Below the pieces are notes generated by a model that saw nothing but the letters and a program-made list of their open reading frames with translations, was not told the origin of the DNA and did not search any database. A stretch of DNA of 63,306 nucleotides, filler included, from Klebsormidium nitens (lineage: Eukaryota > Plantae > Klebsormidiophyceae), in NCBI GenBank assembly GCA_000708835.1. It is 8 parts of 8 records of this genome, joined end to end, with 100 filler letters (N's around TTAATTAATTAA, not from the genome) between each part and the next. Parts side by side here need not be neighbours in the genome. Positions count along the whole stretch, not along the records: positions 26,924 to 43,653 come from DF237982.1; 7 more parts are not named here. One strand, 5' to 3'. Shown in pieces: positions 13,301 to 44,076 of this stretch. Every line of letters starts with the position of its first letter. Position 1 is the stretch's first letter. The translations under genes were made by a program, and so were the position numbers.

Positions 13301-16300
13301 GAAAGCTGGGCGATCCGACTGTTTAAACTGGGCGTTCTGTTCTGCGGAACGCCGGACGTCCAAGGTTAGCGGCAGGGGTTCTCACGCAAATTTGAGTGTG
13401 AATCGCGGAACGTCAAGTGCCGGGTTTCGTGCCGGTAACCAGCGCAGCGACGGCCGAAGTCCTGGCTCAGGTTCAACTTCCTCGGATCAGTCGCCGTGAC
13501 ATGACGTCAGTGCTGACACTTGGGAACGCCCACTTTAACATTAAGCTCGCTTTTGTCAGGTGCCGCCATGCTATTGGCCGACCTGGCGCAGCAGGCGGGC
13601 CTCCCCCCCGGCGTGCTCAACATCGTGCACGGCGCCCAGGACGTTGTCAATATGATATGCGACGACAAGGACGTGCGCGCCATCTCATTTGTGGGCTCCG
13701 ATAGGGTATGGTTTCATTCTCGAAAGGCTTCGATTTGGACTCCCATCGAGTGTCTTCTGCAATGCAAGCCCTTGAATGTGAAGCCCTTAAGCCGGTGCAT
13801 ATTAATAGGACCGCTCGGTCGAAGATCTTCTGCAATCCTCCAGAAGAGTGTGAGTCACGCAAGGGGTTGAAACGGAGCTTTCCCTGCTGGCGGTTTGCTT
13901 AAGGCGACTCCAGCCCCAAACCCCAAATCCGTAGACGTACTTACTGGTCGTTCAATGAACGCGAAAGGGTTGTTGGCGAAGCTGCGTTTTCTCCCTCTTC
14001 ACCCGCACTCCCTCTCCGCAGGCCGGCAAGCACATCTACTCGCGCGGGTGCGCCAACGGGAAGCGCGTCCAGAGCAACATGGGCGCCAAGAACCACGCCG
14101 TCGTGCTGCCGGACGCGGACCCGGACCGCGCGATGAACGCGCTGGTCGGCGCCGCTTTTGGGGCCGCGGGGCAGCGGTGCATGGCCATCAGCTCCGCGGT
14201 CTTCGTTGGCGGATCGGAACAATGGTGAGAATGAGGGTGCGCCCTTCTGTCGGTGGTTCACGTTTTAGGCAACTGGGGGCCGTAGGTCAGCCGAAACGTG
14301 GTCTCGCGGGTTTGGTCGAAGGTTTTAACAGTGCAGTCAGCAGATTGATTCGAAAGTTACGCACACTTTGGTTTCTTCCGTTCCCGAGCAATTAGCCGTC
14401 GGCTGAACAAGTTTGGAATCTGTTTATCAGTGGTTGGAGACCAAAGGAACTTTGTTTGCTGTTACATATGCACCTGGAAGCTCAGTCTGTGGACTCTGTG
14501 CACTTCAGGAGTCTGCAGAGCATCATTCTGGCCGGCTTTGCACCATTCAGTTGGTCACGTCTGAGCCGTTATTCCTTTCTTCAGAATTTTCATGATGTTC
14601 GTTCGCCTTTCTTCCTGCCGCACTAGCTCCACTCATATGAGCATTGAAAATCAGAGGGCATCGAGGAAGCTCGCAAGAAGCCTGGTGCGCACGGTCAGCC
14701 TGAAGTGGGAAAGGCCCTGAAGCAGGAGAGCTTCTGAACCCTTCCACACCTCAGCATCGCGATTTGTCCACGTAGTTTTGCAGGGAGTTGGATCTGGTAG
14801 AGCGCATGAAGAAGCTCAGCGCCAACGCTGGCAGAAAACCTGGGGTTGACGTCAGTCCAAAAGTGAGGAAGCGTTCGAGCGTGTCCAATTTTCGATGTCC
14901 CATTCCGTGTCGTTTGTATCAAATGCAGGGAGTCGGGTCTAGCCGAACGTGCAAAGAAGCTCAAAGTGAACGCTGGCAAGGAGCCCGGGGCTGACGTGGG
15001 CCCGCTAATCAGCCCTGAAGCCAAGGAACGTGCCGAGCGGTTAATTTCCGAAGGGGTGAACCAGGGTGCCCGGTTGGTGCTGGACGGGAGGGGGGTGAAG
15101 GTCCCCGGGTACGAGGAGGGCAACTTCCTAGGGCCTACCATCCTGGCTGACGTCACGCCCGACATGGAGTGCTACCGGGAGGAGATCTTCGGGCCCGTGC
15201 TGCTGTGCCTCAAGGTGGGGAGCGGATCCCCGGGCAGAATTTGACTGCTGACGTCATGCCCTGCTTCTTACAACGGCCCGATCAAGATTGTTGATCGCTG
15301 CACAAATTGAAAGAAAGAGGGAACTGATTGCGGAAGTAGGGCGCATGGGCTCGTGGGAAGCCGAGTGTCATTAGTCTGGGTTTGGAATTGACGCTCGCTT
15401 TTCGTCTTCGCAGGCGGAGAGCCTGGATGACGCCATCCAGACGGTCAACAATAACCCGTGAGACTTGCACCCTGTCGGTTCTTAGATCTGGAAGAAAGTC
15501 TGGAAAAAATGCCTCTACACGAGCGAAGTGACGAGCTTTTTTTGCATCTCATCCGGTCGCCCTTGCCGCACTCACTGCTGAAGGAAACGTCTCAGTCCGC
15601 TTTGAATGTTTGGCCTTAAGTCGACGTGTATGCTTAGGAGCATCTCTGCTCAGGGCCGCTTTCTCGCTTTTCGCTTTGCTTCAGGTAGATTGGTTTGTCC
15701 AACTGTATGGTGCGGATGTCGAACAGCACACAGCTTCTAGCAGCTCTTGAATCAAGGACTGTTGCGCTTGGGTATGTGACGTTATCGCTGACGTAACCGT
15801 CTTGGTGTTAGGTACGGCAACGGTACCGCTATTTTCACTCGGTCAGGGGCCGCTGCCAGGAAGTTCCAGCACGAAATTGACGTAGGCCAGGTGAGCGACG
15901 AAGAGATTTGGAGATTATACGTGCTTGAGAGAACCTTTTACCCGTCGTTATCTTCCAAGTAGCCAGCTGTCTGTATCTCCTACAGGGGTATTTTTTAAAT
16001 TTTACACCCATTAGCTCGGCCGCTTCTGTCAGCCCGCATGCCAAGACAAGGACTATGACAACCCTGTAGAGAACGTCTTGCTCAAGTTTCGAGCTGTTTT
16101 TGTTGTGACGGCTAAAGGTGAACGTGTGCCAGACGGCGAAAGCACCATTTCTTAACCGCTTTTGCGTCGTGAGTTGACCATTTCTTTACAAATGTGCCAT
16201 AATTATCTCTAGAAACAGGCGAAGACATGGTCAGAAAGTGCCGACCTGTGCCGTTTCTCTAGGTCGGCATCAACGTGCCCATCCCGGTTCCGCTTCCGTT

Positions 16301-16794
16301 CTTCTCGTTCACGGGATGGAGGGGATCCTTCCAAGGCGATCTCAACTTTTACGGTGAGGTCGCGTCGCAGTCTGCATACCTCCGCCGTTGTCGGAAAGCG
16401 CTTCATTATCTGCTGATGACCGTAAAGCCATTAGGTATCGTTGGATTTGTATGATGCGCTCATGAAGGCCGATATACGATTGGTGGCTGATTGGTTCTTG
16501 CTTGGTTACGGCGAATGAGTACCTGAGGAAAAGCACGCAAGTGCCCCGGTGGTCTTGCAGATCTTTGACGAGCGATTTCGTCCGATTTAGTAGCCTGTAT
16601 CGTGGTTTTCGAAGCAGCTGTTCGCCCTTGTTGAGAAACGTCAGTTGCTCGGTCCCCCTTTTGAGCCCACCTTTTTTGTTGCAGGCAAAGCGGGGGTCCA
16701 GTTCTACACTCAAACGAAGACTATCACATCATCCTGGAAGGACGATGACGTATCCACTGTTCAGACAAGCTTCCCCAACGCGGGCAAGCAATAG
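10360..16794 (+). CDS. ALDH6: Methylmalonate-semialdehyde dehydrogenase (CoA-acylating), mitochondrial; 13 exons, ~564 aa
   Basis: Exons 10360-10452, 10954-11061, 11364-11438, 11850-12011, 12308-12386, 12732-12950, 13560-13705, 14022-14224, 14929-15214, 15414-15457, 15812-15890, 16263-16353, 16685-16794; all GT-AG, total 1695 nt. Motifs [38 protein letters not shown] (catalytic Cys), [24 protein letters not shown]. Exons 1-2 encode a transit-peptide-like sequence and are less certain. Confidence 0.95.
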
Positions 16795-26660: not shown

Positions 26661-27325
26661 GGCGACATGAAGAAAACTTTAACTGGTTGTGACGTCTACC
26701 CTAAAGCCTCAGCTATAAAGCGGCAATACGACCAGAGAACGAAGCGGAAACTCTGTCGCCTATGCAGCAGCCATGGAAACCCTGGAAGCGCCCTCTTGCA
26801 GAAACCAGAGTTCTGTGTTATATNNNNNNNNNNNNNNNNNNNNNNNNNNNNNNNNNNNNNNNNNNNNTTAATTAATTAANNNNNNNNNNNNNNNNNNNNN
26901 NNNNNNNNNNNNNNNNNNNNNNNGGTTGAATTTGCATAAAATGTCTTGCAGTGAGGCTCCTCGTATCGTCAACATGAAATCTGGCAGAAGGAGAGGCTAA
27001 GCATTGCAACAGGCTGACATGAATGATGCAACCAGGCAAGTTGAATAACCGACACTCAGCTCAAGAATCATGTAATCTCACTCCAGCCTGACAGGTGAAA
27101 CAACCCGGGAAGCAGAGGGACACTCTCCAACCAGAAACGAAGATACTGAAGGATCGGTTTGGATCACCGCATCTACCGTAAACCAGAGAGCTCCAGCACT
27201 CTGCCAGTTTGCAGGCATGCACGAATGCTGTTGCACAGGCCTCGTTGTCGCTTTGAGGAAAACCGCTACTCCTGATCTCCAAGCAGACTGCTTGGCCTAC
27301 TCGTCTGATAGAGGGGGCTGCTTAC

Positions 27326-28436
27326 CTGCAGCTTTGTCGAAGATAGCATTCCAGCCCAACAACCAGTTCCCTGGCCCTGGGTACCCCCGTTCAAGTCGGT
27401 CTAGAAGCTTCGAGCGGCCGTCATCGCTCATCCCTCTCCAGCGGTCCACGGTCAGCTGCTGATTTGCCAGGTGTTCCAGCAAGTCCGAGTCAATATCGGA
27501 ATCGACAGCCTGCCACCCCTTCTTCAAGGCCACTTCTTTTTCCTGTAGTGGGCCAAAAAAAGAAATTAGCATCAACATGTAGCCTGCTCTTTAGCAGCAT
27601 AATGAATCCAGAGAGAAGACAGAGTTGCTCCCTGATGCTGAATACAACTAGCGCTGAACGGTCCCACCCTGCAATGCGAAGATCCCCTTGTCCAGGCTTA
27701 CCTCCTGCGAAGTGGGCCCAGGGTTGCTTTCCACCCCACCCCTCAGCAGAAGTGTCGCTGCACATGAGGAGACCACGTTCAGGTGCCGCAAGTCTGACGC
27801 AGCTGAACTCATCCTGAACTGGCGAGAAACCTCCGAGCAAGTCAGTGGATCTACCACGGCAGGTCAAGGGTCAAGCGCTCCACAACCATTTGCATAATCA
27901 GCCCAACGGCACTTCAAGTGCTTGCAGACCCAGCGCCGCAACCCAAGTGCCTCACCAATCAGCGACCGGCTCTTGGGCATCGACACCCAGTCCGTCGTAC
28001 TACCCGACTCTTGCCCGGCTGCAAAGGCTGGCGCGCTCGGTGCATCTGCAATCAGGAACACATCACAGATCAGCGCAGGTGGCGAAAGACCCACCGCGCA
28101 TCGAAGGCATGAAGAGGTGCTCACTGCCCCCCAGGTTTGCACAAGAGCGAACGCATCAGACCTGCCCAGCCAGATGCGCACGCTCACCTTCCGCGGCCCC
28201 TCCCAGATCCCGCAGCTCTTGCTCAAGTCTCCTCAGCTTTGCTTTCAGGCGGCGCAGCTCCTGGTCTGCTGCCCACGCTGCAGGAGCATACGAAGCATGT
28301 ACACCTTTCGAACCGGTCACTTCCATAAGCTCATTGCTGAACAAGAGGAGAGCAGCTATGAGCCTTGCATGAGATCTAGACCCTATCAACAGCAGGCTTC
28401 CTAAACTGCTCTCACCTGCGCGGTCTCGGTCAATCC
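27326..28436 (-). CDS. Repeat unit A: coiled coil - linker - 2A-like peptide - 72-aa variable domain (partial, spliced)
   Basis: Exons 28436-28416 (partial), 28277-28188, 28045-27956, 27757-27702, 27542-27326; all GT-AG with matching phases 1/1/1/0/1. Translation: AWAADQELRRLKAKLRRLEQELRDLGGAAE DAPSAPAFAAGQESGSTTDWVSMPKSRSLI ATLLLRGGVESNPGPTSQE EKEVALKKGWQAVD...WNAIFDKAA. Confidence 0.8.
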
Positions 28437-28628
28437 NNNNNNNNNNNNNNNNNNNNTTTGTATGGATCACTGCATCTACCATGAACCAGAAAGCTCCAGC
28501 ACTCTGCCAATATGCAGGCATGCACGACTGCTGTCGCACAGGCCTCGTTGTCGCTTTGAGGAAAACCGCTACTCCTGATCTCCAAGCAGACTGCTTGGCC
28601 TACTTGTCTTATAGAGGGGGCTGCTTAC

Positions 28629-29735
28629 CTGCAGCACTATTGAGGATCGCAGTCCAGCCGTTCAGCCACTTCCCTGGCCCTGGGTATTCTTTCTGCAAGC
28701 CACTCAGAAGCGCAGGGCGGTCGTCTTTGGGCGTCCCTCTCCAGCGTGCCAAGGAGAGCTGCTCCTTTGCCAGGTAGTCTAGCAGGTCGGGGTCAATGTC
28801 AGGATCGAAATCCTGCCAGCTCTTCTTCCAAGCCAGCTCTTTCTCCTGCAGTGGGAAGACAACAAATATCAGCACCACGATGTGTAGCCCGCTCTATAGC
28901 AGCATATCAATCAGGAAGAATACAGAGTTGCTCCCTGATGCCTGATACAACTAGCGCTGAACGGTCCCACCCTGCAATGCAAAGATCCCCTTGTCCACGC
29001 TTACCTCCTGCGAAGTGGGCCCAGGGTTGCTTTCCACCCCACCCCTCAGTAAAAGTGTCGCTGCACATGAGGAGACCTCGTTCAGGTGCCGCATGTCTGA
29101 CAAAGCTGAACTCATCTTGTGCCAACGAGAGACCTCCGAGCAAGTCAGTCAAACTGCCACGGCAAGTTGAGGGTCAAGCGTCCACAAAATCTGCAGAATC
29201 GGCCCGACCGCGCTTGAAGTACTTGCAGACTCAGCACTGCAACCCAAGTGCCTTACCTATCAGCGACCGGCTCTTAGGCATGGACACCCAGTCGGTCGTG
29301 CTGCCCGACTCTTGCCCAGCCGCAAAGGCTGGCGCGCTGGGTGCATCTGCGATCAGGAACGCATCACAGATCAGCCCAGGTGGCGGAAGACCCACCGCGC
29401 ATCGAAGGCATGAAGAGGTGCTCACAGCCCCCCAGGTTTGCACAAGAGCGAACGCATCCGACCTGCCCAGCCGATGCGGCCGCTCACCTTCCGTGGCCCC
29501 TCCCAGATCCCGCAGCTCTTGCTCAAGTCTCCTCAGCTTTGCTTTCAGGCGGCGCAGCTCCTGGTCTGCTGCCCACGCTGCAGGAGCATACGGAGCATGT
29601 ACACCTTTCGAACCAGTCACTTCCATAAGTTCATTGCTGAACAAGAGGAGAGCAGCTATGACCTTGCATAAGATCTAAACCCTATCAACAGCAGGCTTCC
29701 TAAACTGCTCTCACCTGCGCGGTCTCGGTCAATCT
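28629..29735 (-). CDS. Repeat unit B: paralogous module with the same exon structure
   Basis: Exons 29735-29715 (partial), 29577-29488, 29346-29257, 29060-29005, 28845-28629; same lengths (90/90/56/217 nt) and phases as unit A. Confidence 0.8.
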
Positions 29736-31378
29736 NNNNNNNNNNNNNNNNNNNNNNNNNNNNNNNNNNNNNNNNNNNNNNNNNAGGCAACTGAGCTTCC
29801 ATACTACATAGGCTGGGGATCTGCTCTTCGATTAACTTTCTGAATGGAAATGGTCTATGAGGTGCTTGGTAACGGAATGGCGTGAGCCCGGCCCGTATAG
29901 CTGCGCCGGGCGCCTTTTGTTCATAGCCTATGCCAGACGGTGTTGGGCTCGGGGTGCCCGGTAGACGTACCGGGCCGGGTTGGGTGGGAATGCAAGGTCG
30001 CGCCAACTGGTGAGTGGTGACCGTCACGGCGTGACTGCCGCGCAGCGCGGCCCGGCAGATCGCGAGACACTAGCGAACAGGAGCAACCGTGACGTTGCCA
30101 GGCCGGCGTGGCCGCCCAATGCCCGCCCAATGGCTGCTAATTTAGGTACCTACATGTGTACCTATCTCACATGGAGCCGTATATCTTCAACAAGTCACTT
30201 CAGCCCTCTTTAAAAAGCTTTGCTACGTCCTCGGGGGCCGCGCTGCCCCCGCGCTGCCGCCTGCAGCATTCAACATCTTATTTTGGCTTATTTTCGGGTG
30301 TATCACTAGCTGGGCTTTGACTACCTTGAGCCCTACAATACCTACACCTTGGCCGAAAAAAAGTCGGCGTCTTGGAGGTTGCACACGCTAGGGACAATAT
30401 GCCAGCTGTGTCGAATGATCGAATGGACGTATTTGTGTTTGCCTAACAGATCGATCTCAGGCTGAAAAAGATCTGGCATCGCATCCTGACCCGGGCGCAA
30501 GTGAAGCACCTTGTGGTTCCAGCCTCGGCATACCCGGTGTAAACCAATGGAACTTGCGTAATCACGTTATTGAGTCCACTGCCATCCGCGTCACACTCTC
30601 GTGTTGGCCCTGTAATGGATAGCAATCTGCTGAACTGTCGATTAAAATGAGCGATATCCAGCGCGTGGTCGGCGGCGGCCAGCCCCATCACACCATCATC
30701 ATCACTTCCCTGTTCAGCATAGCAAAATAGTCCGCCCGTAGACTCCTCATGGCTTCATCGTACGAGATGATTCAGGCTTCAACACCAATTTTCTCCTCGA
30801 TTGTGACCTTCAGCTTGGAACGATTCTTTGCACGCAACCCTTGCAATAATGCGTCCCAAGAAGTGCACCACGAACGGGCCATTCGGACATCCGACAAAAA
30901 GGACACTCAAAGTTTGTGCAGTGCATGATGCAGGATTCTGGACGTCCTGATGGTTTCACAAAGTAGACAGCTAACAATCTTTTGGCTCTCCATTTATAGA
31001 GCAGCAGGCAGCCGGTCTCAACCTAAACGCATCAGGATTCATTGGAGCAATAGATCATGCTAAGTCGAAAGCGATCCATAGCCAGATGTTTCTCAGATGT
31101 TTGCTTCCCATGCCATACGCTACGTTCAGCCACTGCTCGGAGGCATCTAGAGTATGCGCAATACGAATTTTATTGAGCTTGCAATCGACCTGATTCTGCG
31201 ACTACATTTGTTCAGACTTGGAGTACTACTTCAAGTCTAGTAGGTGACTTGAGATGCACGCATGGGAGCGAAACTCATCAAATAATAAGGATTTTAGCCT
31301 CTTTCCTTAGTCATGGACCCATGGATTGAACCCGAATCTTCGCTCGATCTGACAAAGGGTGCTGTTACAGGGTCGTCC

Positions 31379-34300
31379 TCAAAAGTCCCTGGAGGTTCTG
31401 ATATCATCAACGTACTTCTCCTGAACTGCAGCTGCTGTGGAAATGGGGGTCAAGGAAAAGCAGTGTACAGAAGCACTTAAAAGCCAAGCCGTTTGCAAGT
31501 TGTCGAAGATCTCCGCCTGCGCCTTTCGGATATGAAACGGTGCATGGATAATGGCTTAGTCCAGCATACGAGAAGGCCCAAAAAACGAAGGGGCAATCAG
31601 TCAGCAAGTCACGAAAACAAGCAGCACACTTGCTACGATCAGGGCACAAGCTCCCGATATCGAAATGCACAGCAGCAGTTGCCAGTTCGTTCTCAAAATG
31701 TAAAAGAGCACAGCGTCTTTACCCCTTGGCGCACGTAGAGACAAGAGTGGGCTGGCCAATGCAGAAGTTACGGGATGCCTGAGAACTCTGCCAGAACCAC
31801 CACGGACTCCGGAAGTCGCTGATACACGATTGAACGGTCCAGCCCAGAAGGACTGCTTTCGAGATGCGCGAATCCTGCCGGTCGAAAAAGTATTCGTGAA
31901 AACGGGCAAAGCAGCAGGCGGAGGATATTTGTAATAGTCCCAGTTGGTGTCCCCGGCCGCCACCTTGGAGAGCTCCGTCACGTCGCCCTCGATCCCCGCA
32001 AACACGTAGCCGTTGCTCTTGTCGACCAGCTTCACCACTTCGTACACGCTCTCCTTGTCCTGCGACAGAGGGCGACGATCGAAGGGTGTTCGCACACTGT
32101 TCTGCTTCTCATCGAGCCCGAGCCGTGCGGTTGACTTGAATTGATGACGCGACATCCATCCGTACATATTGGCTAGAAAACGGCAGAGTCAGGCTCAGAC
32201 TGTCGGTTGCTTCAATCTAGATAATCTTGCCTTTCGATTGTCTATCAGGGAATCCCAGGTCACGGCCTCAGTTGCATCTTGTTACCAACCAACAATGGAC
32301 CCAGCAGAACCATCTTCTTTGGGGTGAGCTGCTGGACGCCATACCAAGCTTAAAAGCCGCATCCGATCAAGCTGCATCATAGATGCATAATGGGGGTCAA
32401 AGTTCCTGGTTGACAAGAACGTTTGTATCGGATCGTAGACTCACATTGACGTTAAGTGTGGCAAAGCTGACCATTCCATAGTCTTGGATCACCTCGCATA
32501 GCCCCTCTGTCAGCTTCCTGCAGAAGAACGGAACAGATCGGCGTTCGATTTATCTCAAACCGGGAAAGTTGAGATTGATCCGGGGAAGTACATTGGTGAT
32601 GGTTTGGAGCAGGTTGAAGCAGATTTCAAAGTCTTTTCCAATGTAGAGCCTCGACAGGCAGCGCCGGCTCGAGCTCCGTCGGAGATTCTCGCAGGACAAC
32701 CCCAAGCCAACCGATGCTCGAAAGTGAGACTCCCGTGCAATCAGTGCTACCGAATCGACATTGCTCAATCAAAATGAAGTAGGCTGATATCTGCGCATAT
32801 CGAGCAGAACAAGTCAACCAGGAGCTTTTGGCCCAACCATCAAACTCTTGATAGGCACCGAGATCAGAACACCATGGGTGATTCCATTGCAGAAGCACCG
32901 CATGCCCAAAACTCATCTCATGCTGGCAAATTCCCTTCTTGCTCTTGTCCGTTTCATGACTTGTCTCAAGCAGTTGTGCGGACCCTCTTGATGGTGGACG
33001 TCCTCTTGATCGTTCTATGCCCGTTTGCACAACGCTCGTGCTTACCTATACTTTTGGAAGCGGGGGTCCTGGTTGAGGTGGTGCGCTAAGTAGCCAAGGT
33101 CCTGAACTTCCGTGTAGAAATCTAGATTGAAAGCTGGAAGGCAGCAAAAGCATGAATGAGGTCGAGTTTCAGCAGAGTGTTGGACTTTCGACGACCGCAA
33201 AAGACCGCAGCAGTGTCATCATACCCAAATTTCCACGATTTGAAATGCTGATGTCCATTCCTGGCAATCATCCAGAGCTTTGCAGGCAAATGGCCTTGAT
33301 TCCAACCAGCGAGTTCATAGACTTATGAACGGAAAAACAAGACATCTCCGCACCTAATGGTCCGTACTGTTGAATCATGTCAATTTTTGAGAGCACGTTG
33401 ATGTGCGGAAGTCCCAGGTGGAGCATGGTAGATAGGGACAGCAGTAGCGCGCTGACGTAGTTGCCAGGGTCGGTGCACAGGTGGGAGTCGATCAGGTGGA
33501 CCGCTGTCAACTGCAGGCGAAAGGAAGAACAGCTCTCCAGCAACGAAGTGGATTGGAACAGTCTGTCTGGACAGGCATGCCGAAGCAAGAATAATATTGG
33601 TACTGAACAAGGTATTGAACTCTAGCATGAGTGTGCTACGGGTGCACGGCATAAACAGCGCGCAATGATCTTGCTCACCCTGAAGTTCCACTTGTTTGTC
33701 ATGGTGTCAATGACGTTTTTGACATGTGGGTGGAGGGTGAAGAGCTCGACTTGGCCCGGCAAGTCAAAGAGCAGGTAGTGATCTGCAATGATCAGGACTA
33801 GTTAGTTGCAGAAGCAGAGTTAAAGCTGACCAGATCATCAACTCCACATGCATATGTTGGTTAGGTCATCCCCTCTTTCCGCCACATCTTGGCAACTTTT
33901 TTTGCCACAGCTTGAGATACATAAAAACGCTCAGTCATACTCAGGTTAGTAGTCAGGACCAGGAGAGGGACTCGAGGTAATGCAAGGGCATGCATCCCAC
34001 CTTTTGCAAGGGGCTCGAGCTTCTTTTCCAGCCAGTCGATGTTCTTCTCCAGGTAATCCATGCAGTAGACCAGGCCACCATTGGGGCCCAGCCCATACTG
34101 GGTCATCACATCATCCAGCTTGATCAGCTCTTCAATGTCCACGCTACAATCGCAAGGCAGGGCATCATTCGCTGGGTCCAAGTTGATCACTGCAGTCTTT
34201 CTGCAATGATATGAATGCTGGGGGTTGAGATGGGCCAACCAAGACGTAATCCATGAAACGAGATTTACGGGTGACCTTTACTATCCCCCCTAGAACAACT

Positions 34301-34889
34301 TTTGTGATGACGCAGGGCACACTTTCCCCCTCCACCATGAATGTAAGTGCCCTTGTAGAATGCCAAAGGATTCCTTGCTGCTTGAGGAGCATGGCACCCA
34401 CTGGTTTGGGGTCTGCAATCATGTAATGGCTACCGGGCTCAACGAAGATTTGTTGATTACAAACCAACTAAAGGGCCCAACCGACGTAGCGAACTTACTT
34501 CCAGACGTTCCGATACACATGCAAGCAGAGGTTTCTTTGCCGCTTCTCTTTTCAAAGATCTCAGAAAAGAATGTGTATCAAGTAGAAAGCATGTGTAATG
34601 AGTGAAGTTTCCAAAAAGTCTGTTTGCTGGTCATACCGGCAAGCAAAGCCCACATCAAGACTTTTTACCACCACTCCATCAACAACGTCCAAATGAATGC
34701 TGAAAGCACCGTGCAGATTGCTCTCAAGAAGGACAGCAAGAAATGCCACACTTCCATGCCCGTGGTGGTGCACTTGCAAAGGCGCTGGAGTGCAAACCTT
34801 CCAAGAGCCGACAAGAACTGCTGCATCCCATTGCAGTATGTTGTCTTGCCCGAACCGGGAGGTCCAACGACAACCTGCCCAAACGGCAT
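31379..34889 (-). CDS. GPN2: GPN-loop GTPase 2 (QQT1-like); 8 exons, ~300 aa
   Basis: Exons 34889-34798, 34200-34001, 33782-33679, 33510-33354, 33133-33046, 32517-32445, 32059-31929, 31436-31379; total 903 nt. Motifs [55 protein letters not shown]. Confidence 0.93.
31437..31928 (-). other. U12-type (minor spliceosome) AT-AC intron of GPN2
   Basis: 5' site ATATCCTC, branch point TTCCTTGAC (31457-31449), and 3' AC 13 nt after the branch A; splicing restores [11 protein letters not shown]. Confidence 0.9.
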
Positions 34890-35433
34890 CTTGTCATTCT
34901 GGACTTTTCCACTTTAAAAAGCTCGACAGACAAAGTACGGCACACCGCCGCCCAAAGTTCTAGCGCTGCATTACAAGCTGGCTGCTGTACATTTGCGCAT
35001 GAGTGCACCAGAATGCTTCTTGCTAACCACCCTTCCCTGATTGGACCCGGCCTGCAGCTGCCCAGGGCCCTGGACCTGGAATACTAGGTAGGCCTGCAGA
35101 CTTGGTTCCTTGAAAGTTGAAACCATTTGAAACCTGCTCAGAGTCAGAGAGAGAGTCAAGGTTCAATCTCATGCATGCGTTTGCGCCCGCTTGCGCCCGC
35201 TTCTTCAACTTCTCCGCCTCATGCAGAGTCTTCCAGTTCGGGCCAGGGCAGTCGGTAGAACATCCCGGTTCACTTCGTACCTGAAACTGGCTGCGAAACC
35301 CAGTTCCGGGGAACGCCCAGTTTGAACCGGTAGCAACTTCACCACAGCGCAGCAAGGATATCTGCGTGATCCGCATCCTGCTTCGTCCTCTTTCCAATCG
35401 GCACAGGCCAGGGCAGCTGCCGCGCCTGCCGCC

Positions 35434-38383
35434 ATGAGTCACAGGAAGTTTGAGCACCCCCGTCATGGGTCCTTGGGGTTCCTGCCCAAGAAGAGGGCCA
35501 GAAGAATCAGGGGGAAGGGTAAGTAGCCGCCAGCAAGGGTGGGCGCTCGCACGAAGTGGCATCAATGCAAAGGGCTGTTGTTGGTTTGGCGGTTCACTGA
35601 GGGATAAGCAAGGTCAAGGCCCTATAATGAAGCATGGATTAGCAGGTGTGGGGGGGATATGTGTTGCCAACCGAGATGCTGGTTGAGCGTCTGGCCTGGT
35701 AATGGTACCATCTTCAAACGATAAGCGAAGGATGTGCACCTCCTTTGCTTTACTGCAATGCGTGTGTGGCAGTTCCACTCTGAAGGGGCCTTCAAGTTTG
35801 CCGTCTGCCCTGCAAAGGCTCCAATGGACTGGTGACTAAGATGAGCGTCGCTTTTGTTGCCTGCAGTGAAGTCCTGGGCTAAGGATGACCCCAGCAAGGC
35901 CCCGCAGCTCCAGGCCTTCCTGGGCTACAAGGCTGGCATGACGCACATCATGCGTGACGTGGACAAGCCGGGCTCAAGTGAGTATCGGGCGCCGACATCT
36001 TGGGCCTCTTTATCTATATTGAAAGTATATGCTGAAGTTTGGTGCGGGCGCTCATCTATGGCAGGAGGCCGGGTGCCATGTTTTGCTGCATCCACTTCGA
36101 TTTCTATGTCTATCCTATCAAACTGCAGACAGGAGTTATCTGAGCCGTAAGGCGCGTTTTCATCGCTGTATGCTTATGTGACCATTACCAGCAGGTTTCT
36201 TCCGGCCAGAACTATTTTAGGAGTTGGGATTGACATACTGCTGCCCCTTGCAGAGCTTCACAAGAAGGAGACCTGCGAGGCGGTGACCATTGTGGAGACT
36301 CCTCCCATGGTCATTGTCGGTGTCGTGGGCTACATCAAGACTCCTCGTGGCCTGCGCAGCCTGGCCACCGTGTGGGCGCAGCACCTGGACGAGAGCGTCA
36401 AGAGGCGCTTCTACAAGAGGTTCGGCCAGTCCAAGAAGAAGGCTTTCACCAAGTATGCCAAGAGCAAGTACGGCGAGGGGGAGGGCAAGAAGGGAGTTGA
36501 CTCTGACCTGGAGAGGATCAAGAAGTACTGCTCCGTGAGTACCATCCTTGTTGCTTGTGCTCGTAGTCTTTCATCTCAAAATAGTATCAACGAGATCATG
36601 GGTTTCAGTGACCATTACCACCGTAGGTTGCTAGCATCACTGTTGGCTTTCAAGAGTCTACCGGGTCCCGGAATCGTGAGCTGCTGACATAGGGTGTGCA
36701 GACGGGTTGCACTAATTTAGGAATGTTATTCTGGCCACCTTCAGCAAAGCCAGCCATCTGCGCTTCACTCCCAAGTCCTTGCGCGTCTGAGAGCTAGTAT
36801 TATGGTCCCCCCAGCAACCAGCAAATTGTCAAGTAGTTTAGGCTGATCAACAATCTTGGGTTGCAGGTCGTGCGTGTCCTGGCTCACACCCAGGTAAAGC
36901 TCATCAAGGGGATTGGGCAGAAGAAGGCGCACTTGATGGAGGTCCAGATCAACGGTGGCAGCGTGGCTGACAAGGTCGACTTCGCGGTCAAGTACTTTGA
37001 GAAGAAGGTCGGGGTTGACGCTGTGTTCAGCAAGGACGAGCAGATTGACATCATCGGCGTGACCAGGGGGCACGGGTACGAGGGTGTTGTGCACAGGTAA
37101 GCTGTCTGGCTGCTTCAGAATTGGATTGGGAGAAGTGCACTTTCTCACAGGATTGGATTGCTTGCTCTTAATTCTCTTCGGATGGGAATATTCTCTCTCT
37201 GACGAGAGCCCCATTTAATCAAGTTGCCCAGCTCTGGGTGTGAAGCAAACAGCAATAGCGCCCACAGCAATTGCGCATTGGAAATTTGCACCTCTTGGAG
37301 TTCATTCGTACCCTTCTGATCAATTGACTAATGACCGTGTCCTGCAAAAAATTCTTATGCTTTTTGTTGACCAACGTCTGGGCTGTGCTTGCAGGTGGGG
37401 TGTGACGCGGCTGCCTCGCAAGACCCATCGTGGTCTGCGGAAGGTTGCTTGCATCGGCGCCTGGCATCCTGCCCGTGTGGCCTTCTCAGTGGCGCGTGCT
37501 GGGCAGAACGGGTATCATCACAGGACAGAGGTCAACAAGAAGATCTACAGGATTGGCAAGGTAAGGCTTTCGGCATCCATGATTCGGTGTGGTTTGGCTG
37601 CCACAGAAAAGCCCTCACAAGTGAACCTGTCCCTATCCACAACGCTTGTCAGTGCTAGTGATTCTTGTAACTTTTTCCTGTGGTCGTCTTTCAAAAGTTG
37701 AGCCGACAAAGCAGTTTTACACAGCTCCTCCGTGCTGTGTCCTTTGCAGAAGGGTGAGGAGACCCACCTGGCCATGACCGACTTCGACCGGACCGAGAAG
37801 GACATCACCCCCATGGGCGGCTTTGCGCACTACGGGTCAGTCAACGAGGACTACCTGCTCCTCAAGGGCTGCGTGATGGGGCCCAAGAAGCGGGTCATCA
37901 CTCTCCGCAAGTCGCTGCTCCGACAGGTGAGGTTTTGGCTGAAGTGGACCGCAGAAGTGGACCGCACCCACAATTAAATTTGGGGACTGCTTCTTCTGTC
38001 TCTCCGTTTGGGCTGTGATGCGGCCAATGAGACACTCACCACATGCCACTAACTCTCAGGAGTGCACCAAGGGGGGCTTTTGCATTCATCCTGTGTCCAC
38101 TATGCTTCATTTCGTTCGATCACCCTCCAGGCAGGTTGGCTTTGTGAGTCCGACCAAAAATTGAAGCTGTTGAATTGTGGTCATTTGTGCAAGCAAACAC
38201 AACTCATTATTATCCACAGAAGCAGGCACTCATCGGCAGAGCCTTTGTCCTGTGCAGGAGTCCCGGCGTGCTCTGGAGGAGATCAAGCTCAAGTTCATCG
38301 ACACATCGTCCAAGTTCGGGCACGGCCGCTTCCAGACCAGCGCCGAGAAGGCCAAGACCTTCGGCCGGGTCAAGTCGTCTTAG
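35434..38383 (+). CDS. RPL3: 60S ribosomal protein L3 (uL3); 7 exons, ~391 aa
   Basis: [18 protein letters not shown] start; exons 35434-35518, 35867-35977, 36254-36534, 36867-37096, 37395-37560, 37750-37926, 38258-38383; total 1176 nt. Motifs [20 protein letters not shown] and [15 protein letters not shown]. Confidence 0.98.
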
Positions 38384-39487
38384 ACGTTTGGGCACGGTTT
38401 GGGCGGAAGGCAGGCACGTTCCAGGGTCTGTGGTTGGCAAGGCTAGAGGGTCAGGCAGGAGAGGAGCAGGGACTGTCAGGGCAAGCAAAGCCAGCCACAG
38501 GGCCTCAGCTGGCTTGGGCCGCTGCGAGGCGAAGCTGCTTCGGCACTTCCTTTGCATGCCCTCTGCTGCTCTGCAGACAATTCATGATGGGGGGCCGTAC
38601 TTTTATGAATGGGGGTTGTCTTCTGGTGCATGCTTCTTGTTGGCACTTGCATCCAATCTGTTCTGAAATGCTTCATGGCGGCCACAATGCCCGCGTCTAT
38701 AGCTGGAAAACGAAGGCGAATCTTCATGCATGCAGTAAATGACGTCATGACAAGGCTCGTTGATACCTAACCATCTTGAACTCTGACGTGCAATGATTTC
38801 TGTTGTGCCTCCTGCTTCAGGAAGCATATAATTTGAACATATGATCGTATCCCGGACTACTTATATAAGAATTTACAGCCTTTAAATACAGAAGGATCAC
38901 AGAGTCGACCATTAGGTAGGTATATAATTGCTTATACGACCATGTGTATGCCATTGAAGCCTTACACAGCATTTTGATACAGAAAATCATTATTAAATAG
39001 TGCTCTGTCCTCAGTTAAACTGGCAAAGCTCCAAAAATTCATGCAACTTGGCGCTTATAGGTTTTTGGAAGTAACAGGTGCATGCAGGCTAGCCACCAGT
39101 CGCTCCCGTCTCCCAAGCCCGCCACGCGATTGTGAACCATGAGCACAAGATTTGAATGAAGCGCATGACTCGATTCAACATGATACTATTATACCTCCAT
39201 GTACTTGCTGGCCATGCATGGGCCCGTGACAATCGCCAAATGTTTGTACCTCCTGAAAAGTCCTCGACTACAAGTGTTAGCAAAGGGGAACGTTACGAAA
39301 GAAAATCTCATCCAACTTACATTGTTCATGAAAGACACTACTATACACGTCACCACAGAGCACCTATCAGCACAAGAATCAGCCCAAGTGCTACTTTACC
39401 AGTAATGGAAGCTGAAATATATCGAATACAAAAATCTTGCTAGGGATCGTATACCCTTTCAATCTGCAATCTTTGACATCCGCGGGA

Positions 39488-43466
<3,979 letters not shown>

Positions 43467-44076
43467 TGAACCCGTCCCTCGTCCGCAGATACTGCCAGCC
43501 ACAGCTCGTCCTACCGTGAAATGGGCAGAGGCTTCAATCACGAGTCACGACTGCTCATACAGCGATCACACATGATCGCAAACATTTCCGTCCATCGACA
43601 GGTTCGGACGGCTGTTTGGCCGGAAAGGGTCCGGTTGATCACACATCAAATCTNNNNNNNNNNNNNNNNNNNNNNNNNNNNNNNNNNNNNNNNNNNNTTA
43701 ATTAATTAANNNNNNNNNNNNNNNNNNNNNNNNNNNNNNNNNNNNNNNNNNNNGCCGAGAGCAAGGACACGCAGCACACAAGCAGCTGATGTAGCCTACG
43801 CACAAGGCAATCGATCGCAAACACGCAGTCACCCAGGTCCAAGCACAAGAACCTCGCTTACCTGCAGAAGTGTGTAGGGCGAGAGGGACGTCTCTTGTCC
43901 AGGCTGCTCCCCTGTATACTTGGCGGCAGGAAAGGGTCGTTGTGGGACAGGTCGTGTGTCGGCGGTCGTTGTATGTGTCGTCAGGAGCGTCGTTCAGCGA
44001 AGGCAGGTGTGGGGCGCATACGTCGTGCAGCGTGTAGGTGTGCGCCAGCAGGGTGCTGCAAAAACAACGTCAGCAG

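Follow-up and report, generated by a model that had tools for sequence, protein, structure and literature searches.

StopGo or 2A sequences are a ubiquitous laboratory tool, and their natural use in cellular genes is rare. Whether an alga employs such a signal in a nuclear gene of its own is a question raised by one scaffold of Klebsormidium nitens, a streptophyte alga of the lineage leading to land plants. At the low-coordinate end of this complete scaffold of 16,730 nt (positions 26924-43653 of the window, i.e. the whole analysed stretch of 63,306 nt, along which all coordinates count), the minus strand carries two direct repeats of about 1.3 kb, spaced by about 1300 nt and 74-97% identical segment by segment. 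Both repeats, termed units A and B, contain a 56-nt mini-exon with the octapeptide GVESNPGP, which an initial annotation of this DNA had taken for a 2A-like signal in a host gene family. The analysis presented here indicates that the mini-exon is probably a StopGo/2A element, by which one spliced mRNA would yield a leader and a separate downstream protein.

Each unit comprises exons of 90 (e2), 90 (e3), 56 (e4, the mini-exon) and 217 nt (e5) with GT-AG borders on the minus strand, and splicing yields a single open frame that reads ...SRSLIATLLLRGGVESNPG and directly thereafter PTSQE... Followed from e3 through e4 to e5, this frame is ...DWVSMPKSRSLI-ATLLLRGGVESNPGP-TSQE-EKE..., and it continues into a 72-residue domain. 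In both units the mini-exon is preceded by cag and followed by gtaagc. The occurrence of the 56-nt exon in both units and its in-phase splicing into PTSQE had been proposed from the sequence, and both are confirmed by the sequence and by RNA joints in three runs. Contigs of four public runs were mapped to unit B, three of which behave as RNA, having introns without depth and exons of high depth, and one of which (X16) behaves as DNA, with an even depth of about 3 across introns and no joints. The RNA-like contigs (runs X1, X2 and X10; two organisms) contain exactly the predicted joints between e2, e3, e4 and e5 (coordinates in Table 1), which appear as CT..AC on the plus strand and thus as GT..AG on the gene strand. 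Moreover, variant letters at five positions of the RNA contigs are exactly those of unit A, hence both units are transcribed.

The transcripts also reveal how the units continue at either end. Upstream, e2 is joined directly to e0, the 21 nt at the gap that encode ..RIDRDRA, followed by 13 letters absent from the window (..SGCF), so that the unit B transcript runs on into letters outside the window as ...AGTGGTTGCTTCC. Downstream, splicing in phase 1 connects e5 with an exon that lies outside the window. Both this downstream exon (CCTTTCAACC...) and the upstream letters (…GGTTGCTTCC) are missing from the window and from every fetched locus, and metagenome scans with the downstream exon and with the 2A exon gave 0 hits each. 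The scaffold's own gene model, P0001 (GAQ92503.1, KFL_010330010), was rejected in two respects, namely its MEVTGSK start, which is intronic, and its connection of unit A's e5 with unit B's e2 across the gap, since the RNA has e0 joined to e2 and e5 joined to the outside exon. The RNA-like runs have zero depth at 28301-28436.

Comparison of the two units yields a clear signature of constraint upstream of the motif. The 9 differences in e3 are all silent third-position changes, and the 2 differences in e4 fall into one Leu codon (TTA vs CTG); both observations had been made in the initial annotation and were reproduced. For the part upstream of the motif as a whole, nonsynonymous divergence (dN) is 0.006 and synonymous divergence (dS) 0.20, 11 of the 12 changes being silent, and this part is under purifying selection. 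Exon e5 is more diverged, with 57% amino-acid and 75% nucleotide identity, a dN/dS of 0.42 and a dS of 0.69, while the introns flanking it are 90-92% identical (pooled distance 0.10). Positive selection as the cause of the e5 divergence is unsupported, given the dN/dS of 0.42 and a dS far above the intron distance. Because the dS of e5 far exceeds the divergence of its introns, a different history of this exon is suggested, e.g. exchange with other paralogues. The P0002/L006 sequence resembles a mosaic of both e5 versions.

The core octapeptide in the spliced frame of both units fits the experimentally expanded StopGo core (D/G/C/N)(V/I)ExNPGP (PMC12846837), hence the earlier reading of a core with G for D as 2A-like holds. 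The upstream context, SRSLIATLLLRG, is hydrophobic and rich in leucine at about -19 to -10, as suits a StopGo element; it has L at -10, -11, -12 and -16 as well as I at -15, and its TLLLRG resembles a leucine-rich (L-rich) motif class that ends in (A/G/S)G with G at position p12 (PMC12846837). In virus datasets, G and D are equally common at p12 (PMC12846837). According to the accessible part of a preprint by Snell & Matreyek (bioRxiv 10.64898/2026.06.17.732966, hereafter the preprint, cited throughout from that part), active eukaryotic peptides are enriched in L, and the Leu residues at -10 to -12 fit this enrichment. Viral StopGo/2A elements, i.e. F2A from FMDV (foot-and-mouth disease virus) and its relatives, accordingly share with the mini-exon the core, the L-rich upstream stretch ending in G-G with p12 = G (PMC12846837), and the location between two functional protein modules. 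Unlike the viral elements, the sequence described here occupies a 56-nt exon of its own, within a streptophyte algal gene that is nuclear and contains introns. Natural use of StopGo was not found in plant viruses and was called rare in cells (PMC12846837).

The bare DNA pattern AAYCCNGGNCC is weakly unusual (2 matches vs 0.31 expected, and 2 are reached in 5 of 100 shuffles), so the case rests on conservation among paralogues. Both units read GGVESNPGP, while GGIESNPGP is found in L002, GCVESNPGP in L003, AGIEQNPGP in L004, GGVERNPGP in L006 and in a K. nitens RNA contig, GDIKGNPGP in L007 and GCVECNPGP in P0007; L001 has GCVECNPGL, L005 a decayed TSECNPVP, and none was found in L008. The NPGP is intact in 7 of the 8 other loci or open reading frames (ORFs) that carry the mini-exon, plus a published paralogue, GAQ93188.1. 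The residue before V/I is only G, C or D among the paralogues, all of which belong to the set active in viral StopGo, and the motif of L007, with K for E, lies outside (D/G/C/N)(V/I)ExNPGP. Across the fetched loci, acceptor and phase of the mini-exon agree, while it measures 56 nt at four loci, 59 nt at a fifth and 71 nt at a sixth, and the sequences flanking the motif are only 30-50% identical across loci. The motif always marks the border between a conserved leader (52-65% identity) and variable downstream parts. The RNA junctions and eight further loci thus lend strength to the proposal of a gene family in which a 2A-like signal is conserved, and the expected conservation of NPGP in additional paralogues was largely observed.

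The start of the intron behind the mini-exon is a further conserved feature. Its first ~20 nt (27679-27701 and 28982-29004, minus strand) are kept across diverged paralogues as gt[ag]agc CTGGACAAGGGGA, and are likewise conserved in L001, L002, L004, L005 and L006, while the rest of the introns differs. This stretch could be a splicing control element or the coding tail of a retained intron (..VSLDKG..).

The family was delineated by searching a profile of the e5 domain against 1.84 billion representatives. The search returned 12 proteins, all of which, bar one, are from Klebsormidium or are metagenomic/Logan ORFs; the exception, the 2179-aa Tudor/ankyrin protein P0009, was treated as spurious, as it matches solely on a GxGKWYPG repeat. 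A protein homologue search with P0001 found only itself, and an Atlas feature search found nothing. Through KFL_000380150 (P0005), four further K. nitens paralogues were obtained. Their exons are 65-80% identical in nucleotides with little similarity among introns, and their leader of ~230 residues (the part with 52-65% identity) combines a helical region with a Cys/His zinc-finger-like exon and a coiled coil. The zinc-finger-like exon follows the pattern CHxCGAT..FGLRG.K.G...KYFC..H..GCFRID and ends with GCFR[IV]D.DRA in all paralogues, and a short exon following the coiled coil ends in ..SMPxSRSLI. A structure model of the leader was unusable (pLDDT 46, a per-residue confidence measure). The contigs L006 and L007, which stem from other assemblies, have the common zinc-finger, coiled-coil, 2A and SAM-like exons and then apparently another P-loop cargo (..AIIGNPG). 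Where the K. nitens paralogues have their helical N-terminal region, these two contigs carry a different, basic first exon (MARGRPH..RSKSD..; L006 3453-3791 and L007 6171-6524, 74% identical to each other), hence the leader part common to all members consists of zinc finger and coiled coil only.

In contrast to the leader, the cargo behind the motif varies. In P0005 and P0014 a SAM-like domain is followed by a P-loop nucleoside triphosphatase (NTPase), which matches Pfam AAA_22 in P0005 (E 7e-07) and remains below threshold in P0014, with faint AAA_16/nSTAND3/NPHP3_N matches otherwise. P0015 carries a different ATPase, and P0017 a helicase that matches the herpesvirus origin-binding protein family (UL9-like). 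Sequence searches against solved structures gave marginal UL9 matches for the P0017 cargo (E 0.07) and no credible match for the cargos of P0005 and P0015. The model P0016 (L008) has the leader, and the 2A exon was not found in it; directly downstream on the same strand lies a Prim-Pol + D5_N gene (L008 20480-24772). On the metagenomic contig L005, the leader of a second member (15963-16301) starts ~3.7 kb past the end of a P0015-like member. Because L005 carries two successive members, the family is taken to be clustered head to tail. For the first member of L005, whose 2A exon is the decayed one, no leader was detected upstream.

The domain directly behind the motif was modelled by AlphaFold from 15 family sequences as a five-helix bundle (pLDDT 86), and the family displays 7 nearly invariant columns. 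The best Foldseek match of the model is the LEAFY SAM oligomerisation domain 4ude (TM score 0.75, root-mean-square deviation 2.2 Å over 71 columns, E 0.39). VIA-align likewise placed LEAFY SAM first at Z 7.4, where Z below 8 can reflect a generic helical arrangement, followed by mostly SAM domains, many at Z 4-5.7 (ASK3, tankyrase, SARM1, CASKIN2 and DGK-delta); a Pfam hit was not obtained, and an Atlas fold search of the domain was uninformative. The e5 domain may therefore be termed SAM-like on a fold resemblance of moderate strength, which falls short of proof of homology.

Taken together, these features point to the following mechanism. One spliced mRNA would comprise the leader (zinc-finger-like exon and coiled coil), a short exon, the 2A mini-exon, the SAM-like domain and further exons off the scaffold. 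The mini-exon would supply an L-rich stretch and GVESNPG/P, and once the ribosome has reached ...ESNPG with Pro-tRNA in the A site, the nascent L-rich chain in the exit tunnel would block formation of the peptide bond. The leader would then be released with NPG as its end, and translation would resume at Pro to yield a protein that starts with PTSQE- and contains the SAM-like domain and the cargo. Read across the junction, as in an uncleaved fusion, the sequence would be ...ESNPGPTSQEEK.

Release and resumption as such are predicted from the agreement with the motif and from the behaviour of a paralogue peptide in human cells. The supplement of the preprint lists K. nitens GAQ93188.1 (KFL_013500020) with the peptide SQLLIATLLNIGGVEPNPGP, classed as 'skipping'. 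In the printed sequence, which reads ..LLNIGGVEPNPGP at the motif, the zinc-finger exon, the coiled coil and the SAM-like domain all recur, hence GAQ93188.1 is a paralogue. It shares with the gene in the window the ..SMP.S..LIATLL.. context, the 2A core and the leader pattern, and differs in residues such as LLNIGGVEP vs LLLRGGVES. The remark of the initial annotation that no such case was known for streptophyte algae is superseded by this entry. In the accessible part of the preprint, GAQ93188.1 appears in the supplementary table only, labelled LINE ORF1p-like (LINE, long interspersed nuclear element), and family, mini-exon, splicing and cargo are undescribed there.

Several points weigh against skipping in the window's own gene. 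The full gene extends beyond the scaffold, and the cargo of this member is not on it. G instead of D at p12 requires a compensating upstream context (PMC12846837), and the signal is dispensable in some copies, since one paralogue has NPGL and one NPVP. The classes of the preprint derive from a human-cell Sort-seq reporter and a support vector machine that assigned 86% of its own training samples correctly, and in the same dataset (bioRxiv 10.64898/2026.06.17.732966) the related library peptide KRSLIAMLLTIGGVESNPGP is classed as 'falloff only', i.e. release without resumption. In addition, the intron preceding the mini-exon is retained in one low-depth contig (X10), and a further RNA contig of low depth runs across the e5 donor unspliced, hence minor unspliced forms exist.

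As for the family as a whole, it is conceivable, and put forward tentatively, that K. nitens natively uses StopGo by way of a portable cassette of leader and 2A mini-exon, placed before a SAM-like domain and before NTPase/helicase cargos of at least four unrelated kinds, in an undescribed modular system of conflict-related or selfish nature. What kind of gene family this is constitutes the first point at which other explanations have to be weighed. The family itself, as proposed in the initial annotation, is well supported, but its status as a host family is uncertain, because the helicase, the Prim-Pol/D5_N neighbour and the short scaffolds with clustered members fit a selfish or conflict-related element as well. 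An alternative held to be somewhat doubtful, though a serious contender, is that the family belongs to a selfish or virus-derived element, whose leader-2A cassette is a mobile 5' module akin to the 2A-like sequences of transposable elements. The herpesvirus match of the P0017 helicase agrees with it, as do the position of the L008 member directly upstream of the Prim-Pol/D5_N gene, the short, gapped and repeat-rich scaffolds (16-27 kb) that harbour the members, the clustering both here (two units) and in L005, a DDE transposase 6 kb from L002 and the grouping of GAQ93188.1 under 'LINE ORF1p-like' by fold match in the preprint. On the contrary, reverse transcriptase or endonuclease genes are absent among the called genes of the fetched loci, several spliceosomal introns occupy conserved positions, the paralogues are old, judging from the exon and intron identities given above, and the neighbours on the scaffold are housekeeping genes. 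The ORF1p label probably reflects the coiled coil only, since the genes are spliced and no reverse transcriptase or endonuclease was found in any locus.

Known systems with natural 2A-like sequences can be compared with the family. ORFs of non-long-terminal-repeat (non-LTR) retrotransposons with an APE-type endonuclease carry N-terminal 2A-like sequences (Odon et al. 2013, as reported in citing papers), and ORF2p cases from Haematococcus are given in the accessible part of bioRxiv 10.64898/2026.06.17.732966. Like the family described here, non-LTR retrotransposons occupy multi-copy repetitive loci, and in them a 2A sequence stands between a variable leader and an enzymatic cargo. The present family differs from them by the lack of reverse transcriptase and APE endonuclease, by several conserved spliceosomal introns and by its NTPase/helicase cargo. 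Assignment to LINE ORF1p/ORF2p with N-terminal 2A was therefore rejected, as the products and called genes of the eight loci gave no RVT or endonuclease Pfam matches and contain spliced introns. The NOD-like receptor (NLR) genes of sea urchins (Roulston et al. 2016, PMC4981915) are likewise a cellular multi-copy family with a 2A-like sequence N-terminal to an NTPase-containing protein. In sea urchins, however, this sequence forms the very N terminus and also acts as a signal sequence (PMC4981915), whereas here it follows a leader of >100 residues. Pfam detected no NACHT or NB-ARC domain in the paralogue cargos, only AAA_22-type matches, and identity with an NLR/STAND receptor carrying an N-terminal 2A was rejected in view of these cargos and of the long leader; the cargo of the window's gene is off the scaffold.

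With regard to mechanism, the main rival is a 'stop without go' attenuator, in which the leader is released at NPG and resumption is rare, so that the motif throttles the SAM-like domain and the NTPase cargo. This is considered unlikely, the evidence being divided. The 'falloff only' class applies to the library peptide mentioned above and to its D variant, many L-rich eukaryotic 2A-like peptides reduce protein abundance according to the preprint, and a conserved intron-retention tail after e5 (GKQ[P/L]PLSDE-stop) together with other short isoforms suggests regulated output downstream of the motif. These observations are opposed by the 'skipping' class of GAQ93188.1 in the preprint and by the conservation of the SAM-like domain along with long intact cargo frames in paralogues, which speak for the synthesis of a downstream product under selection. 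Still less credit is given to the notion that NPGP is kept for structure, as a turn or linker between leader and SAM-like domain, with no recoding: NPG turns are common linkers and two family copies tolerate NPGL or NPVP, but conservation extends beyond the turn to the entire octapeptide and the L-rich stretch upstream, p12 is limited to G, C and D, all of them residues with activity in viral StopGo, and the 20-mer of the paralogue was scored as skipping in the preprint. An explanation by chance or by an artefact of assembly, for which the shuffle result and the abutment of both units on gaps at the same repeat phase could be cited, is refuted for the motif by exon sequences read in RNA-like and DNA-like contigs of independent runs and by the same motif in independent loci and other assemblies, and retains a negligible probability. 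A StopGo/2A element thus remains the preferred reading of the mini-exon.

Two side observations concern the transcripts. Read-through of the e5 donor on the minus strand yields the tails GKQPPLSDE-stop in unit B (27297-27325) and GKQPPL-stop in unit A (28607-28628), and similar tails terminate the ORFs of the distant relatives P0004, P0011, P0012 and P0013; the read-through may represent a conserved short isoform with the SAM-like domain alone. Furthermore, run X1 contains a very deep short contig at 27332-27396 (loose end 27396), with a bin depth of ~3,900 vs ~450-550 in the adjoining e5 bins. In it, 27 letters identical to those of the L006 2A exon (..GGVERNPGP) run into the 3' part of e5, out of frame (NPGPT-stop) and without GT-AG borders; a paralogue that has been rearranged, or an artefact of the contig, may account for this.

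The features of the locus are compiled in Table 1. Each unit starts right after a run of N, and units A and B are fragments of larger genes cut by assembly gaps rather than small genes that are complete in themselves. They represent partial copies of a single member, or of two close ones, of a multigene family specific to Klebsormidium. Both gaps open at the identical repeat phase within the zinc-finger exon. Since same-phase breaks are typical of an assembler at multi-copy sequence, the true gaps are probably larger than their 20 and 49 N, and because both units abut gaps at the same phase, their tandem order may be a scaffolding artefact. Exons e2-e5 all lie within contiguous sequence and none spans the gap between the units, whose two sides are discontinuous in mRNA according to the RNA contig joints. 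In the window, tblastn with five paralogue leaders and the L006/L007 first exon detected no leader exons upstream of unit A. The other genes of the scaffold are ordinary nuclear genes.

Table 1. Features of the scaffold end carrying units A and B, and neighbouring genes, in window coordinates
Feature	Position	Strand	Basis or remark
Unit A, upstream partial gene copy	28457..29735	-	direct repeats and sequence; gaps on both sides
e0, unit A, last 21 nt of zinc-finger exon (..RIDRDRA)	29715..29735	-	homologous to RNA-shown unit B e0; matches paralogue GCFRIDxDRA
e2, unit A, 90-nt coiled-coil exon (AWAADQELRRLKAKLRRLEQELRDLGG..)	29488..29577	-	sequence
e3, unit A, 90 nt, end ..DWVSMPKSRSLI	29257..29346	-	variant letters present in RNA contigs
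e4, unit A, 56-nt 2A mini-exon, (A)TLLLRGGVESNPGPTSQE	29005..29060	-	NPGP codons 29028..29017
e5, unit A, 217 nt, 72-aa SAM-like five-helix domain	28629..28845	-	ends in phase 1
Unit B, downstream partial gene copy	27154..28436	-	direct repeats and sequence; scaffold end 230 nt beyond, at 26924
e0, unit B, last 21 nt of zinc-finger exon	28416..28436	-	RNA loose end at 28281 joins e2 to e0, then 13 letters outside window
Annotated model start region (MEVTGSK..)	28305..28336	-	intronic between e0 and e2; unused by RNA
e2, unit B, 90-nt coiled-coil exon	28188..28277	-	joint 28045/28188 in RNA contigs
e3, unit B, 90 nt	27956..28045	-	joint 27757/27956
e4, unit B, 56-nt 2A mini-exon	27702..27757	-	NPGP codons 27725..27714; both flanking joints in RNA contigs
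Predicted skip site, unit B	GGG 27719..27717 / CCC 27716..27714	-	
e5, unit B, 217 nt	27326..27542	-	joint 27542/27702; loose end at 27326 to exon outside window
Assembly gap	28437..28456	.	hides at least the remainder of unit B zinc-finger exon, possibly unit A downstream exons
Assembly gap	29736..29784	.	unit A, matching repeat phase; no leader exons detectable beyond
GPN-loop GTPase (ATP_bind_1)	33861-34238	-	
Ribosomal protein L3 (RPL3)	35854-36687	+	
Aspartic protease with saposin B insert	40779-41541	-	

Cellular 2A-like sequences as such were already known and one paralogue is part of a published screen; what the present analysis adds is the family-level picture, in which the mini-exon is dedicated to the signal, the leader is common, the domain behind the motif is SAM-like and the NTPase cargo varies. 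The value of the present locus is limited by that earlier screen, by the gapped and fragmentary state of this copy and by an activity in the alga that is predicted only. If the proposed reading is true, ribosomes of the green lineage meet a StopGo signal naturally, and a nuclear family of Klebsormidium harbours a spliced, transcribed and selectively maintained 2A. Such native 2A sequences would be available for algal and plant engineering. Moreover, one leader would be co-expressed with, and physically uncoupled from, several NTPase cargos, which recalls the modules of immune systems or selfish elements.

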